Made by a program: the position numbers and the translations under genes
NCBI GenBank assembly: GCA_965603825.1
Contig: CBFDEM010000050.1
Coordinates: forward strand, 124,001 to 188,000
Length of the DNA: 64,000 nucleotides
From: Blepharisma stoltei ATCC 30299
Lineage: Eukaryota > Protista > Ciliophora
Reading direction: 5' to 3'
Notes under the pieces: model-generated
Seen by the model: the letters and a program-made list of their open reading frames with translations, nothing else
Told to the model about the DNA's origin: nothing
Databases searched by the model: none
Part shown: positions 6,001 through 49,856 of the stretch, in pieces
How positions within the stretch are numbered: position 1 is the stretch's first letter
How the letters are laid out: the number at the start of each line of letters is the position of its first letter

Positions 6001-7739
6001 ATGTGACAAAGATTAAGCATATTTATTATTTGGCTAGAGCTTTCAATTCAATCTGTAGCATCACATGATGATGAAATTACAAAATTCTTCTTAAGTGAAA
6101 TTGAAGATTATGTAAAAAGCAACACGTTTGAAGGCATACCAAAACTCTCAGCTTCAGGTTGCAATCCTCCAATAAGCAATTGTGTCTCTTGTATTACACC
6201 TTCAAAATGCGCAAGCTGTTCAGCCAGCTATCTTCCAAATGCAGATAATACTCAGTGGCTCATTTTGTGAAACTTGCAATAATGGATTTCAGTGCGATTC
6301 TTGCGTTGAGAATTATATTTTTTATAATGGAGAATGTCACTCATGCCCCCAAAACTGCGCACAATGCAATAAGACAGCCTGCGTAGAATGTGATCCTGGA
6401 TTTTATGCAGAAGAAGGAATTGCCTGTTTGCCACTCTTAGTTATCAAAAAAAAATAGACATTTATAAGTTTTTCACTTCTATTCAGCGGCAGCAACCGAG
6501 CCTTTAGTCATCGAATGGTGCCAAGGTTAAATAGGTATCGCATTCAAGAGATGCTTGCATATTTATAACCTTATCAAGGTTTAAAAAACACTACTTCATA
6601 AATAAGATTGTAGGCATATGTAGTCTATTCCCTTTATGTGTGAAGCCTCCATATTTAAATGACTACACGTATAGTATGCCCTTCTGTAAAAAGGCAACAG
6701 ATGTGTAAAAATGGCGGGAGATCTATTGTCAACAGCCCTTCAGTAGACGTTAAACGATGCATTATTTTAAGTTAATTTGCCATGCTCTACAGGATGTGAA
6801 GCATGCAACCCTGGTCCTTCGAGTGGCTCAATATGCACTCAATGTTATGATCTAGACCATTCACAACTAAAAAATGGCGAGTGTTCTTGCACAAAGGCTA
6901 ATCAAATATATAATCAAAACAATATCTGTGCTTGCCAGCCTGGATATTACCTTGACTCTAATGGTGTTTGCCAACAATGCAATATTGGCTGCCAAACTTG
7001 TGCATCTCCAAATCAGTGCACAGCTTGCTTTGATAGCGATTTTATGGTTTTTAATACAGATGGAATTTGTTCATGCAAGACTAACGAGCTTACTTATAAT
7101 ACAACTACTCATACCTGCAATTGCCCTTATGGAGAATACCCTGACCAGCAAACCGGACTTTGCAGCCCATGCCAAGATACTTGTGCAGACTGTGTCTCCT
7201 ATAATATTTGCCTTTCTTGCATTGACAATAGTATTTTATATAATACTGGTAAAGGAAATTGCATATGCCAAGACGGGAGCAAGGTATATAACAATGTATC
7301 GAAGTCTTGTGTTCCATGTCCTAATGGAAATTATCCTTCTTTTGGAGTATGCTACCCATGTGGATCTGGCTGTAATTCCTGCTCATATTATAATGAATGT
7401 AATCAATGCTACACAGGTATGCATTTATCATCAGATAACACAGGCTGCATATGTAATAATGCTTATACGCTGTTTAATCCTGTTACAAATACTTGTGAGG
7501 ATTGTGATCCTGCTCAGCCTGCTTGTGATGGAAACTGCCTTGAAGGATGCAAAATATGCACATCTCCTGGAACGTGCCAAACCTGTTATGATGCTGAGAA
7601 TATGGTCAGTAAAAATGGAGAATGTAGCTGCATAAATACAGATCAAAAGTACAGCTTTACAAAGAGAAAATGCGTGGACAATAGCTCAGCACAAGAGCTA
7701 GCTTTGGTTTGGGTTTTGGCGCTTTATGCGGCCATTTAA
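6001..7739 (+). pseudogene. Cys-rich surface protein paralog 1, disrupted (N-domain deletion, 8-nt deletion frameshift, 342-bp insertion)
   Basis: ATG TGA CAA AGA = MWQR as in paralog 3 (ATG TGG CAA AGA). KFFL joins directly to SEIEDY, so ~150 aa present in the paralogs are missing. Frameshift near 6257 gives TAA at 6280. Insertion at 6434-6775. The 3' part (6777-7739) is intact to ..LALYAAI. Confidence 0.85.
6434..6775. mobile_element. 342-bp insertion flanked by 7-bp direct repeat TTTGCCA (TE remnant or IES-like sequence)
   Basis: TTTGCCA at 6427-6433 and 6776-6782. Removing the insert plus one copy restores ACLPCSTG, colinear with paralogs MCLFCSTG and MCMWCSTG. No TIRs or long ORF seen. 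Confidence 0.75.
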
Positions 7740-8373
7740 TCTAACTAAAGTTTATCAAATAAATTGTTTGTGAGAAAATAACAGTTTTAAAGTTCTGATT
7801 TTATTAGAGGTCTAAGTTTGCAGCAGGTATCCTCACTACCTTTAGGCTCATTCCAATAGAGCCTGTTCTCATTTCTTATTATTTGATTGGTTTAATAGGC
7901 TGTTATTATATAATAAGTCTGTAAGTTTAATGCAATTTTTATGGAAAAAGCTGGATTTAAAAAATTTAATAAGTGAAGCCAATATTTTATTTCTAAAGCA
8001 TTTGAATAATAAAGAATTTTTAAGAAATATTTTTACAATACTTAAAAAAGCTGAAATACACTCGAGAGCAGGCATGATCCCACCTTAAAGCCAAGCTATT
8101 ATAGTGCTCTCTCTATATATATTTTTAATTATCATTCTAATTTAATAAAAAGTTTTTCTTCATAAAGCAGTTATTTATTCAAGATTTAAAATTATTTAAT
8201 TTTTAGAAATAATTAAATTTTAGAAAGTTTTCGCTCCTACTATTAAATTATTTAAAATAATATTTTAAGGATTCAACTATAATTAGATGCGCTTCATCTG
8301 ATGTAAAAAATATCTAAAATGCATCACATTTTATTAATCTAAAATTATGGCTTAATGTGCTGGTGAAATAAAT

Positions 8374-10221
8374 ATGTGGAAAAGATTAGGTATTTCTCTT
8401 ATTTTGGTAGGACTTTCTTTAGCATCGTCTAATGATAATGAAACTCCAAAATACTTCTTAAAAAGCTTGGCTGATCCTAGCAAGGGAAACTACTACCCTC
8501 TTAGAATTTCATATGAGGTCGATGAAAGTTCATTCAGAACTGCTCTTTTAAATAAAACTGTAAAAGCAGCTGCTGATATATCGATAAGAGTTTTATCAGA
8601 TTTAGTTCTTTTTTCTCCTTCAAAAGCTGGTTTTAAGTTTGGAGAGAGAATTCAGTGTGATGACTTTTTGATTCGCCAAATAGTAAAAAGCCAAGCAATT
8701 GATGCAGATTTTGGTTTATACATCAATTTAAGCGACGATTTCAAAGATGACTTAATCACCACAAAGAAATGTAAAAATGAGAATCAATTTTTGACCGCCT
8801 TAGTCACAATGAATTCTAAGAAATTCTTATCACTTGAAAAGATCATCCAAGTGAAAGCACTATCCTCAAGTATAGTAAATATTATTTTTGAGGATAATTT
8901 ACTTGGAAAACAATTGCTGAAAGAAATAGATAATTACTTAAGCACTCACAGCTTTGAAGACTCAAAAATTATCACTGCTTCAGGCTGCAATCCTCCAATA
9001 AACAATTGCGTTACTTGTAAAACACCAACAATTTGCTCAAATTGTTCTGCCAGCTATCTTCCAAACGAAGATGGCACTCAATGTTGTGCTGGGGAATATT
9101 GCAAAACTTGTAATGATGGATTTGGTTGCGATTCTTGCATTGATAATTACATTTTCCACAATGGACAATGTCTTCCATGTCCTCAAAATTGTGCTCTATG
9201 TAACACAACAGCCTGTGTAGAGTGCGACCCTGGATACTTTGTATTAGATGATACCATGTGTTTGTTCTGCTCTACAGGATGTGAAATTTGCCATGCTGGT
9301 CCTTTAAGTGATTCAATATGCACTCAGTGCTATGATCCGACAAATTCAGTGCTTACAAATGGAGAATGCTCTTGCATAAAAGCTAACCAAATATATAGCC
9401 AAAATAATATATGCGTTTGTGCTCCAGGTTATTATGAAGACACTAATGGAATTTGCCAACCATGCAATACTGGCTGTCAAACTTGTACTTCTCCAAGCCA
9501 ATGCATAACTTGTTTTGATAAAACTTTTACAATTGTTAATGCAGATGGAAGCTGCTCATGCAAAACTAATGAGCTAACTTATAATACAACGACTCATACT
9601 TGTGATTGCCCTAGAGGTGAATACCCTGACTCTAAAACTGCACTTTGTGACCCATGCCAAGATAGTTGTGCATTATGTATCGCATATGATATTTGCTTTG
9701 AATGCATAAATAACAGTATTTTATATAATACTGGAGATGGAAATTGCACCTGCGCTGATGCATCAAAAATTTACGACCCTACTACAAATACTTGTGTCTC
9801 TTGCCCAATCGGAAAATATGCTTTTCAGGGAAATTGTTATAAATGCCAAGTCGGTTGCTCTGACTGTGAATTTTGAAACGAATGCACAGAATGCTATCCA
9901 GGCATGCATTTGGCAACATCTAATGAATATTGTGAATGTGATGATCCTAAAAAAACATTCAATCCGAGCACTAATACCTGTGGAGATTGCGAGAAAGAAG
10001 GAGGTTGTGGAAATGGCTGTGCAGAAGGATGCAATTTATGTGCGTCCCCTGAGGTATGTGAAACTTGCTATGATTCTGAGAATATGGTTAATAAAAATGG
10101 TGTATGCAGCTGTGCAAATCCAAATCAAAAGTTCAGCGTTTCTGAGAAAAAATGTGTGGACAATAGCTCAGCAAAGGGGCTAGTTTTGGCTTGGATTTTG
10201 GCACTTTATGCAGCTATTTAA
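8374..10221 (+). CDS. Cys-rich (furin-like/CxxC repeat) surface protein paralog 2, 615 aa, predicted GPI anchor
   Basis: Signal peptide, ~180-aa N-domain, CxxC repeats and hydrophobic C-terminus (SSAKGLVLAWILALYAAI). TGA at 9874 joins two track ORFs in frame (EFWNEC vs paralog SYYNEC). Confidence 0.9.
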
Positions 10222-10813
10222 TCTAACTAAGGTCTTTAAAATAAATTAGGTGTATATCATAAATAATGGTTTTGGCTATATTTGTCTGCTTATAAAGAAT
10301 ATAATATATTACTGCTAGCTCTTCACTGTTGGTCTGGATTTCTTGTTTTTATTGATATCAGTGCTCATAGGACTTGCGTATTGCGATTCCTTCTTATCAG
10401 GCAGAAAAATTATTTATTTTTAGAACGCGTTTTCATAACTCTGAATCGTTCCTAAATAAATTAGCCAGCAATTTTTATTTATTCTAATTAAAGTAAAAAT
10501 TTACCCTATATGAGAATGGCCATTATTTATTATTTTACGCATCTTAAAATAGCTCTGCAGTCAAACTAAATATTTAATGCATTTAATTACTATCCTTTGT
10601 TTACTATTTTTGCTAGTCTTAAAGTATTCTCGTCTTGAACTCATCGAGTCAATTTTCATTAATTAAAAAACTTAATTAGTTCGAATCATTTCATCCTGTT
10701 TAAAATTTACATTTAAAGCAATCTATAAATGCCAAAATAAGTTTTATTTAAGTATTATGACCTATTATGAGCAAGTAGGTTAAATTTTAATTAAAATATT
10801 TTAGAGTTTTATA

Positions 10814-10869
10814 TATACAAATTGCCCGAGGATGGCGCTATTTTGAACCATCCTCGGGCAATTTGTATA
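10814..10869. repeat. Perfect 22-bp inverted repeat with 12-nt spacer and TA ends (MITE/IES-like hairpin)
   Basis: TATACAAATTGCCCGAGGATGG-cgctattttgaa-CCATCCTCGGGCAATTTGTATA. Confidence 0.9.
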
Positions 10870-10975
10870 ATTCATATTGATCTTATATTACTTCATTTAT
10901 TTTAATTTAATTCAATTCAAAAGTCCATGATACTTTGGTTTAAATACCAAAACCCTAATTCTGTTCGATCTAAAG

Positions 10976-11050
10976 AATATGGCTAAATGAGCTGGTGAAA
11001 TAAATATCTGATAGAGATTAAGTGCAAATCTTAATAAACCTTTAGCATCG
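10976..11050 (+). pseudogene. 5' relic of a fourth surface-protein paralog
   Basis: aatatggctaaatgagcTGGTGAAATAAATatctgatagagattaagt matches the upstream and start region of the three paralogs, with ATG changed to ATC. Confidence 0.65.
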
Positions 11051-11440
11051 CAGAGTTAATTAATTTCAAAATTGCTCTTTTTTCATATATTTTTATTAAG
11101 GAAAATATTATATAAATTATTGATTTTTTAAATATTTTGATGCAAACTTTTACGTAAGATTTAAGCTATATAAGTTATTCTTTAAAGCAGATTAAAACGT
11201 TATGAATGAATTTTTAATATAGATAATTAAGTCCTAGCCTAATTATAAGATTGTTTTAGTTATAAAAATTCTAATCTTTCAAACAAAAGATTTTTAAAAT
11301 CCTTTGAATAATTCTCCTGTAAAAATAAATTTTGTTACAACAAATAAATAAATTTCTTTCCATATTGCAAATGTTTAGAAAATTTTAGCTTAGGATTTAC
11401 AACGATAAGAATATGGTTAATTCCATATGGTGAAATAAAT

Positions 11441-13792
11441 ATGTGGCAAAGATTAAGTATTGCTCTTCTTTGGCTGTTACTCTCGACCCAGTCTTTGGCG
11501 TCTAAAGATATTCACGAAACTCCAAAATTCTCCTTAAAAAGCTTAACTGACCCTCATTTAACGGATTACTACCCATTAAGAATTTCATTAGAGGTTGACG
11601 ACGATTTCCTTCAAAACACCCAGTTGAATAAGACTGTAAAATCAGCTGCTGACACTACAATGAAAATTTTATCATATTTAGTCCTTTCTAAAGCTTCAAA
11701 ATCTGGCTTTAAGTTTGGAGAGAAAATTCAGTGTGATGACTTTTTGATTCACCAGATAGTAAAAAGTCAAGGTATTGATGCAGACTTTGGCTTATTTATC
11801 AAATCAAGTAGTGATTTCGAAGATGACTTGATTACGATAAAGAAATGTGAAAGCGGAAGCCAACTTTTTGTCATCTCAATGGCAATAAACCCAGAGAAAT
11901 TCTTGGCTCTTGGAGAGGTCTCACAAATTAAATCAATATCCTCAGCAATTTCAAGCATCATTTTTGAGGATAATTTGTATAGAAATCAGCTACTGAGCGA
12001 AGTCGAAGACTACTTAACCGTCCACGCCTTTGAATATATGCCAGCAATCGCTGATACAGGTTGCAATCCTCCAATAAGCAATTGTGTTACTTGTAAAACG
12101 CCAACAGTTTGCTTTAATTGTTCTGCCAGCTATCTTCCAAATGAAGATGGCACTCAATGTTGTGCTGGGGAATATTGCAAAACTTGTAATGGCGGATTTA
12201 ACTGTGATTCGTGCATTGATGATTACATTTACTACAATGGAGAATGTCATCCATGCCCTTCATATTGTGCTCTATGTAACACAACAGCCTGTGTAGAATG
12301 TGACCCTGGCTATTATCCATTAGAAGGTATTATGTGTATGTGGTGCTCTACAGGATGTGAAATTTGCCATGCTGGTCCTTCAAGTCTCTCAATATGTACT
12401 CAATGTTATGATATAGACAACTCAGTACTTATAGATGGTGAATGTTCTTGCAAAAAAGCGAATCAAATATATAACCAAAATAATATATGTGTTTGCGCTC
12501 CAGGCTATTATGAAGATACAAATGGAATTTGCCAACCATGTAATACTGGCTGTGAAACCTGCACTTCTCCAAGCCAATGTATAACTTGTTTTGATAAAAA
12601 TCTTACAATTGCTAATGCAGATGGAAGCTGCTCATGCAAAACTAATGAGCTAACTTATAATACAACTACTCATACTTGTGATTGCCCAAGAGGTGAATAC
12701 CCTGACCTTGTAAGTGGACTTTGTGACCCATGCCAAGATAGTTGTGCATGGTGTATCGCATATGATATTTGCTTTGAGTGCATAAATAACAGCATTTTAT
12801 ATAATAGTGGAAATGGTAATTGCACGTGCTTAGATGGATCAAAAATCTATGATCCTACTACAAATACTTGTGTACCTTGCCCTGATGGGAAATACGCTTT
12901 CGATGGAAATTGCTATAACTGCATTTCTCCTTGCGCTGCATGCTCTTATTATGATCATTGCACAGAGTGCTTCCCAGGCATGCATTTATCCTCATCTAAT
13001 GCTAGTTGTGTCTGCAATGACCCTACTCAAACCTTCAATTCAAGTACAAACACCTGTGGAGACTGCACCGAGGGAAGTTGCAAATGCACAGATTCACAAG
13101 TTTACGATCCCACAACAAAAACTTGTGTTTCTTGTCCTACTGGAAAATATGCATCTGATGGAGTATGCTCCCCATGCCAGTCAACTTGCTTAGCATGCTC
13201 ATCTTCTAGTGAGTGCACACAATGCTACCAAGGCATGGATTTATCATCCAATGGTGCTTGTGAATGCACAGGCACTAATGAAGTATTTGACCCAACTTCA
13301 AAAACTTGTCAAGCCTCATGCTCAGATCCATCCAAGGTTTATGACCCTTTAACGAAGTCCTGCGACAATTGTCCTAATGGAAAATATGCTTCTGACGGAG
13401 TATGCCTTCCGTGTCAGTCGAATTGTCTTACCTGTACAAACAATAATGGATGCACAGAATGCTACTCAGGCATGACTTTGTTGTCAAATAACACTTGTGT
13501 GTGTAGTGATTCTGAAAAAATATTTGACCCAAGTGCAAAGAGTTGTAAAGATTGCAGCGATACCCAAAATGGCTGTGAAAATAATAGCTGCGCAGAAGGA
13601 TGCATTTTATGTGCGTCCCCTGAGGTTTGTGAAACTTGCTATGATTCTGAGAATATGGTTAATAATAATGGAGTATGCAGCTGTGCAAAGCCAAATCAAA
13701 AGTTCAGCGTTTCTGAGAAAAAATGTGTGGACAGTAGCTCAGCAAAGGGGCTAGTTTTGGCTTGGATTTTGGCACTTTATGCAGCTATTTAA
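11441..13792 (+). CDS. Cys-rich surface protein paralog 3, 783 aa, predicted GPI anchor
   Basis: Uninterrupted ORF with the same architecture as paralog 2 plus extra Cys-repeat units. Confidence 0.92.
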   Translation: MWQRLSIALLWLLLSTQSLASKDIHETPKFSLKSLTDPHLTDYYPLRISLEVDDDFLQNTQLNKTVKSAADTTMKILSYLVLSKASKSGFKFGEKIQCDDFLIHQIVKSQGIDADFGLFIKSSSDFEDDLITIKKCESGSQLFVISMAINPEKFLALGEVSQIKSISSAISSIIFEDNLYRNQLLSEVEDYLTVHAFEYMPAIADTGCNPPISNCVTCKTPTVCFNCSASYLPNEDGTQCCAGEYCKTCNGGFNCDSCIDDYIYYNGECHPCPSYCALCNTTACVECDPGYYPLEGIMCMWCSTGCEICHAGPSSLSICTQCYDIDNSVLIDGECSCKKANQIYNQNNICVCAPGYYEDTNGICQPCNTGCETCTSPSQCITCFDKNLTIANADGSCSCKTNELTYNTTTHTCDCPRGEYPDLVSGLCDPCQDSCAWCIAYDICFECINNSILYNSGNGNCTCLDGSKIYDPTTNTCVPCPDGKYAFDGNCYNCISPCAACSYYDHCTECFPGMHLSSSNASCVCNDPTQTFNSSTNTCGDCTEGSCKCTDSQVYDPTTKTCVSCPTGKYASDGVCSPCQSTCLACSSSSECTQCYQGMDLSSNGACECTGTNEVFDPTSKTCQASCSDPSKVYDPLTKSCDNCPNGKYASDGVCLPCQSNCLTCTNNNGCTECYSGMTLLSNNTCVCSDSEKIFDPSAKSCKDCSDTQNGCENNSCAEGCILCASPEVCETCYDSENMVNNNGVCSCAKPNQKFSVSEKKCVDSSSAKGLVLAWILALYAAI

Positions 13793-49457: not shown

Positions 49458-49856
49458 CTATTTCATTACTTTCAAGAGAGTATATTTCCATCCCTCATCA
49501 CATTCAGGCGGCATTTCATTTCCAACAGGCACATATGTAACCCATCTCCAGCCTGGCCCCCTTGCCCCTCGTGCTCCTTTATCTCCTTGAGGGCCTTGCT
49601 CTCCTCTTGGCCCTTGATCTCCTTGTTCTCCTTGCTCACCCTGTGGCCCTTGCTCTCCTTTTTCCCCTTGTTGACCTTTTTCCCCTTTTTCTCCTTGGTC
49701 ACCTTGGGGTCCTTGCTCACCTCTTGGTCCAGCGTTTCATTCAGCTTCTTCAAGGCCGCATCCACAGTTTGAATCATCTACATCCCCTTCTAAAACCTTT
49801 AGTTTTGAAGCGATAACAACGAATGCTAACGTCATCAGAATCAGAATCTTCACCAT
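49458..49856 (-). CDS. Secreted mini-collagen-like protein (132 aa, 20 Gly-X-Y triplets)
   Basis: MVKILILMTLAFVVIAS signal, CGC, EW(TGA)NA, GPR-GEQ-GPQ..GAR-GPG, short aromatic tail, TAG. Confidence 0.85.

Follow-up and report, generated by a model that had tools for sequence, protein, structure and literature searches.

A Blepharisma stoltei gene encoding a short, secreted collagen-like protein, the outlier of a ciliate mini-collagen family

Non-animal collagen repeats have been catalogued and are rarely tied to a structure. A minus-strand stretch of a Blepharisma stoltei contig, described from its letters as encoding a secreted mini-collagen, raises the question whether it is a real gene, whether it is native to the ciliate and what its product does. 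The genome searched was the 41.46-Mb, 64-contig B. stoltei assembly, and the window, i.e. the whole 64,000-nucleotide stretch that was analysed, is C50:124001-188000 of that assembly. The published B. stoltei macronuclear genome is 41-Mb, and UGA codes for Trp in it (PMC9942806). Read in this way, an open frame extends from an ATG at 49856 to a TAG at 49458 (399 nt, 132 aa), with the following features:

49458..49856, minus strand: whole coding sequence, 132 aa, intron-free as seen, one TGA read as Trp (open reading frame, public annotation and RNA-run contigs).
49809..49856, minus strand: predicted signal peptide, aa 1-16 (hydropathy; M1, L7 and A16 invariant in 13 of 13 family members).
49788..49799, minus strand: KVLE, aa 20-23, an x-hydrophobic-hydrophobic-E/Q motif and candidate pro-peptide processing site (motif comparison).
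49758..49766, minus strand: C-G-C motif of the acidic linker, aa 31-33, whose Cys are candidates for inter-chain disulfides (sequence; alignment to the CGC in the paralog at L009:2083-2544).
49737..49739, minus strand: in-frame TGA, codon 40 (Trp40), which contig record 21 in run X4 crosses joint-free.
49551..49730, minus strand: 20 uninterrupted Gly-X-Y triplets, aa 43-102 (sequence and Pfam).
49461..49550, minus strand: 30-aa Trp/Tyr-rich tail with Cys119, aa 103-132, private to this gene (no relative in searches).

The layout claimed in the preliminary description for a minus-strand frame with TGA as Trp was recovered in full, from signal peptide, acidic CGC linker and 20 triplets to a tail of about 30 residues rich in Trp and Tyr with one Cys. 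Within the window, TGA occupies the conserved Trp of motifs in two kinases and one PP2C, and TGA read-through is needed before the long genes join up. Cys and Gln codes were rejected on account of these conserved Trp sites and because read-through of TAA and TAG yields overlapping junk frames. A tiny intron excising the TGA was also rejected, as a GT..AG pair is absent around it and one contig crosses it without a joint. The gene had been called hidden, but it was missed solely by a table-11 ORF track; the public B. stoltei annotation (GCA_914767885.1, contig CAJZBQ010000050.1) calls the identical 132-aa protein. It lies between a LITAF-like gene on one side and a kinesin gene on the other. 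The GC-richer island reported there is real (47.6% GC), but its source is the amino-acid content of the protein, since GC3 is a host-like 0.32 (0.27-0.41 across seven neighbours) and GGA leads among the Gly codons, as it does in the host. The locus is confirmed to be a real Blepharisma gene whose product is small, secreted and collagen-like.

Four runs of one study cover the region; their type was guessed to be RNA, and they are kept as strandless contigs. These contigs sit on genes and skip intergenic gaps, and two of the four probable RNA runs (X2 and X4) have contigs over the gene. The X2 contig covers 49469-49728 with zero differences. The X4 contig covers 49566-49767 including the TGA, and both are free of gaps and joints. 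X4 carries seven differences, three of them synonymous, four conservative changes in X or Y and none at Gly, although this sparing of Gly falls short of significance, being expected by chance in about 25% of cases. Transcription is likely, and is graded so rather than proven because strand and level are unreadable from contigs. The proposed check by RNA-seq was thus answered in part, by the contigs of two probable RNA runs on the gene; the supplement of the B. stoltei genome paper holds no collagen expression data. With strandless contigs, translation of a 179-aa plus-strand frame or of a 103-aa second minus frame, both open over the repeat, has to be weighed. Such shadow frames likewise overlie several members of the gene family treated below, and signal peptide, Pfam match, family conservation and gene call occur only in the Gly-X-Y frame, making another coding frame extremely improbable.

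The Pfam Collagen family (PF01391) matches the protein with 42.7 bits, above its cut-off of 27.2. The second-longest Gly-X-Y run in six frames of the window has four triplets, and in 100,000 shuffles of the protein no run exceeded eight. The triplets carry E8 P6 D3 A2 Q1 in X and Q11 R4 K4 G1 in Y; all six Pro are thus in X, Cys is absent, 19 of the 40 X/Y positions are charged, and KGE and RGE motifs occur twice each beside the four Arg in Y. The likeness to bacterial and phage collagen-like repeats noted earlier (Pro in X; Gln, Lys or Arg in Y) holds, restricted to repeat composition. The absence of Pro from Y supports a composition that, on sequence grounds, is independent of hydroxyproline. 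Helices free of hydroxyproline are stable in sawfly silk and bacteria, with Arg in Y and ion pairs cited as stabilisers (PMC3790195). No secreted prolyl 4-hydroxylase was found in the genome, where at least one 2OG-Fe(II) match lacks a signal peptide, and no match to P4Ha_N exceeded the cut-off, both counts being lower bounds; prolyl hydroxylation is irrelevant to this chain. The AlphaFold monomer (pLDDT 42) was uninformative and too poor for a fold search.

Genome-wide, 13 genes are built as signal peptide, linker, single Gly-X-Y run and short tail. The triplet count is exactly 27 in eleven of them, 28 in one and 20 in the window gene. Contig C3 carries one pair, C4 one trio and one pair, and C53 one trio; tandem clusters on these three contigs comprise 9 to 10 of the genes. 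C34, C48 and C50 (the window gene) each carry a singleton. The helices of eleven paralogs contain 3-10 Cys, whereas those of L002 and the window gene contain none. Diverged paralog pairs differ by 12-20 synonymous Gly-codon changes per pair with every Gly retained, which argues for selection on triple-helix register.

Family membership of the window gene rests on the N-terminus, because helix and tail show no kinship. Its N-terminus aligns with that of L009, CGC included, at a score of 67, with 0 of 2000 shuffles as good, compared with a best score of 36 for 41 non-ciliate signal-bearing collagens. The family N-terminus profile gave 10.5 bits (7 of 500 shuffles as good), weaker than the L009 alignment, and the P19 of the paralogs is lost. 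Helix X/Y identity is at most 18/40 with paralogs and at most 21/40 with unrelated prokaryotic repeats. The tail (3 Trp, 2 Tyr, 1 Cys) scored -2.4 bits with the paralog tail profile, 1901 of 2000 shuffles being equally good, and shares a short ECDE likeness and nothing more with three paralogs. The wider search that had been suggested for this non-collagen tail was run on its own genome, on PHROGs and on 1.84 billion representative proteins and returned no relative; four weak matches are unrelated repeat proteins without collagen. The window gene is the divergent outlier of a 13-gene secreted mini-collagen family. No description of a Blepharisma mini-collagen family was found in the literature, of which few subscription papers were covered, and the family is apparently undescribed.

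Such divergence could also mean a drifting paralog, a shortened and weakly transcribed copy that no longer forms a useful triple helix. The gene is seven triplets below the family norm, has lost P19 and has an unrecognisable tail, and its contig depth is low, with contigs in only two of four runs. On the other hand, all 20 Gly are intact and neither stop nor frameshift is present despite deep divergence from all the paralogs; the gene retains its signal peptide and CGC, and the X4 variants are synonymous or conservative. Decay of this kind is therefore quite improbable.

Some further sequences touch on the family. Five Pro/Cys-rich paralogs, L123-L126 and L130 among them, have a 16-nt element, CCATTT...CATAT, 30-35 nt upstream of their ATG; it has 11 matches in the genome, five of them before paralogs, against 0 for the reversed control, and is absent before the window gene. 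Its use as a regulon guide was dropped, as the matches beyond the five paralogs were uninformative. Two secreted proteins have the family N-terminus. One, of 343 aa (L030:1501-2529, plus strand; C56 from 185873; 32 bits), has at its centre 63 Asp-Asp-X triplets (X = His, Arg, Cys, Asn, Trp or Lys) in place of Gly-X-Y, and a tail with weak likeness to the family tail (equalled by 57 of 2000 shuffles); it is possibly a metal-binding partner, or its repeat may derive from Gly-Asp-X. The other, of 136 aa (L031:1204-1611, minus strand; C12 near 355266), is repeat-free and has two FLQ motifs.

At the N-terminus of the window protein, aa 4-14 are hydrophobic (Kyte-Doolittle 11-mer value 3.1, against a maximum of 0.24 elsewhere) and are followed by a cleavage-like site between V-I-A and S. 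The linker (aa 17-42) is acidic and contains C31-G-C33. Its interpretation as seven decayed triplets, with G34, E37 and W40 in register, is unsupportable, acidic-linker codons being mostly one step from Gly. An x-hydrophobic-hydrophobic-E/Q motif lies inside aa 16-40 in 13 of 13 collagens and in two non-collagen kin, at an identical position in four paralogs; its background is 11.5% per 25-aa stretch, and the 15 copies are not independent. Toxoplasma rhoptry pro-proteins are cut by ASP3 at an S-phi-X-E site (PMC5595437), which the KVLE motif resembles but for the missing Ser. Tetrahymena granule pro-proteins require the aspartyl protease CTH3, which groups with the apicomplexan enzymes (PMC4142616). 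The pepsin-type aspartyl protease family has 84 matches in the Blepharisma genome, many as tandem runs on C13, C26, C36 and C20. The motif hints, from sequence comparison, that the collagen kin may be packaged into regulated granules, although it may also be a general mark of ciliate secreted proteins.

A further question is whether the gene is native. The best database and PHROGs matches to the protein are prokaryotic or phage and cover the repeat and little beyond, and in the covered part of a collagen survey Stentor coeruleus has no listed collagen domain. Both points would fit a recent transfer from a bacterium or phage, lateral acquisition having been suggested as possible. Against it stand the confinement of matches largely to the repeat, with zero PHROGs matches to the N-terminal and tail pieces and no relative of the tail anywhere searched; the host-like GC3, GGA-led Gly codons and in-frame TGA; and an N-terminus from a host family that includes non-collagen members. 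A recent transfer is thus very improbable, and the suggestion is not upheld in that form; the repeat is too low in complexity to bear on an older foreign origin. In three word searches for relatives, prokaryotic repeats crowded out the results, so that absence is well tested for the tail only; among the 360 proteins returned, signal peptide and Cys in the helix were combined in Blepharisma proteins only. Atlas matches were generic collagen clusters. Among the matches listed by a metagenome scan, none of the 78 loci read encodes a protein built in this way; two human-gut-metagenome records (L055 and L074), not taken to be human DNA, were left out.

The native gene was compared with known collagen systems. 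With the cnidarian minicollagens (nematocyst/polar-capsule Ncol) it shares a short uninterrupted helix, flanking Cys and a multigene family; the signal peptide predicted from hydropathy, the candidate pro-piece suggested by the motif and a putative disulfide network would be further likenesses. Cnidarian minicollagens have a six-Cys domain (CRD) at both ends, polyproline (or Gly/Ser-rich) flanks, a KR pro-site and usually 12-16 triplets, whereas the window protein has no such domain and instead two Cys before and one after the helix, an acidic linker and an aromatic tail, no KR and 20 triplets (PMC7981951). No sequence relationship to cnidarian minicollagens was found. The minicollagen likeness proposed earlier therefore stands as an analogy of short Cys-flanked helices and fails as a class assignment, six-Cys domains and polyproline being absent. 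Prokaryotic and phage collagens (Scl1/Scl2, phage tail fibres) have in common with the window protein Pro only in X, Gln, Lys or Arg in Y and high charge, but the window gene lacks homologous flanks, an anchor and a V domain and has host codon usage and a eukaryotic family context. The sawfly cocoon-silk collagens SfC A-C are likewise small, secreted and free of hydroxyproline, with Pro biased to X and Arg in Y, and serve in a protective case; they are of independent origin and unrelated sequence and form animal silk-gland fibres without covalent cross-links (PMC3790195).

Within ciliates, the covered part of Linden and King (2021, bioRxiv 10.1101/2021.10.08.463732) lists collagen domains in five of seven species (Paramecium, Tetrahymena, Ichthyophthirius, Oxytricha and Stylonychia) and none in Pseudocohnilembus; in Oxytricha and Stylonychia the listed domains include Pro-rich ones, and Stentor coeruleus has none (Data File 3), and the median repeat length of SAR collagens is 85.5 aa. 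That part of the catalogue includes short Gly-X-Y domains in alveolates, as here, and describes no secreted fixed-length Cys-rich family; no Blepharisma entry was found in its table. Collagen repeats in ciliates are thus already catalogued and not new in themselves. A Gly-Lys-Lys run of 10 in B. stoltei (L014, C12:527316-527399) falls just below the collagen cut-off, and runs of this type may explain some of the Pro-free 'collagens' listed for ciliates.

As to function, a native gene with a structural extracellular role in a secreted matrix is the reading we consider probable, in agreement with the structural component proposed in the preliminary description, and it is strengthened by the 12 paralogs of the same build. 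The chain would enter the ER by its signal peptide, and a short pro-piece might be cut at the KVLE motif within a secretory granule. With the collagen helix rise of 0.29 nm per residue, three chains winding their 20 triplets would give a rod of about 17 nm, which could be stabilised without hydroxyproline by X-position Pro, Y-position Arg and ion pairs of the Lys/Arg-Gly-Glu type. CGC and Cys119 could fasten the three chains together or, through disulfides, join them to the Cys-rich paralogs of 27 triplets. As a helix of 20 triplets is out of the 27-triplet register, a homotrimeric minor part, such as a cap or adaptor, is likelier than membership in the main rods. The aromatic tail might nucleate the trimer or bind wall polysaccharide, and the end product would be a cross-linked extracellular matrix.

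Alternatively, the product may be a soluble stalk-and-head protein, in which the collagen rod displays the aromatic tail as a binding head for recognition of prey, mate or surface, apart from the structural network of the paralogs. The 20 triplets and the private Trp/Tyr tail are unique to this gene, its helix lacks Cys as otherwise only that of L002 does, and it is a singleton between housekeeping genes without the paralogs' upstream element. Yet the N-terminus retains the CGC of the family, and the 30-aa tail matches no family; the heads of C1q or C-type lectins are far larger than 30 aa. A role of this kind appears unlikely.

Under the structural reading, the resting-cyst wall is given somewhat less than an even chance. 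A plausible though still minority candidate, only slightly behind it, is the extrusome or pigment-granule matrix, and a surface coat is a minor possibility. The cyst wall of B. stoltei is structured (PMC8891572), and Blepharisma pigment granules are discharged into a capsule (PMC2106926). There is a weak tilt to the cyst wall, because Pro-rich collagens are listed for the encysting Oxytricha and Stylonychia and, in the covered part of the catalogue, none for Stentor coeruleus. The correlation is a weak one, since Pseudocohnilembus, a genus with cyst-forming species, has no collagen listed in that part. More speculatively, and with well under an even chance, Blepharisma may have independently evolved a minicollagen-like system of about a dozen length-matched disulfide-linked rods, with the window gene as a shorter capping chain and the Asp-Asp-X protein as a sister, whose pro-proteins would be held in regulated granules and polymerise at discharge into a capsule or cyst wall. 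If true, this would be a single-cell counterpart of the nematocyst wall.

The window gene alone is an annotated outlying family member. A family of secreted, cysteine-linked proteins of fixed length, in a ciliate that can be cultured, would permit a direct test of whether protist architecture is built from true triple helices. No list of cyst-wall or granule-matrix proteins of Blepharisma was found in the literature, and the family supplies named candidates for either structure. With no Pro in Y and only 60 helix residues, the window chain is the family member that lends itself most simply to expression and melting.

Two other features of the window were observed. Before 48801, at the LITAF-like gene, contigs of runs X3 and X4 bear 49-77 extra letters with no counterpart in the neighbouring DNA. 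They probably stem from an exon further upstream that is joined by splicing; the annotation gives this gene as 100 aa spread over 700 nt. Window positions 6771-13792 hold three Cys-rich surface-protein-like open reading frames (48-96 Cys), two of which are paralogs with signal peptides.
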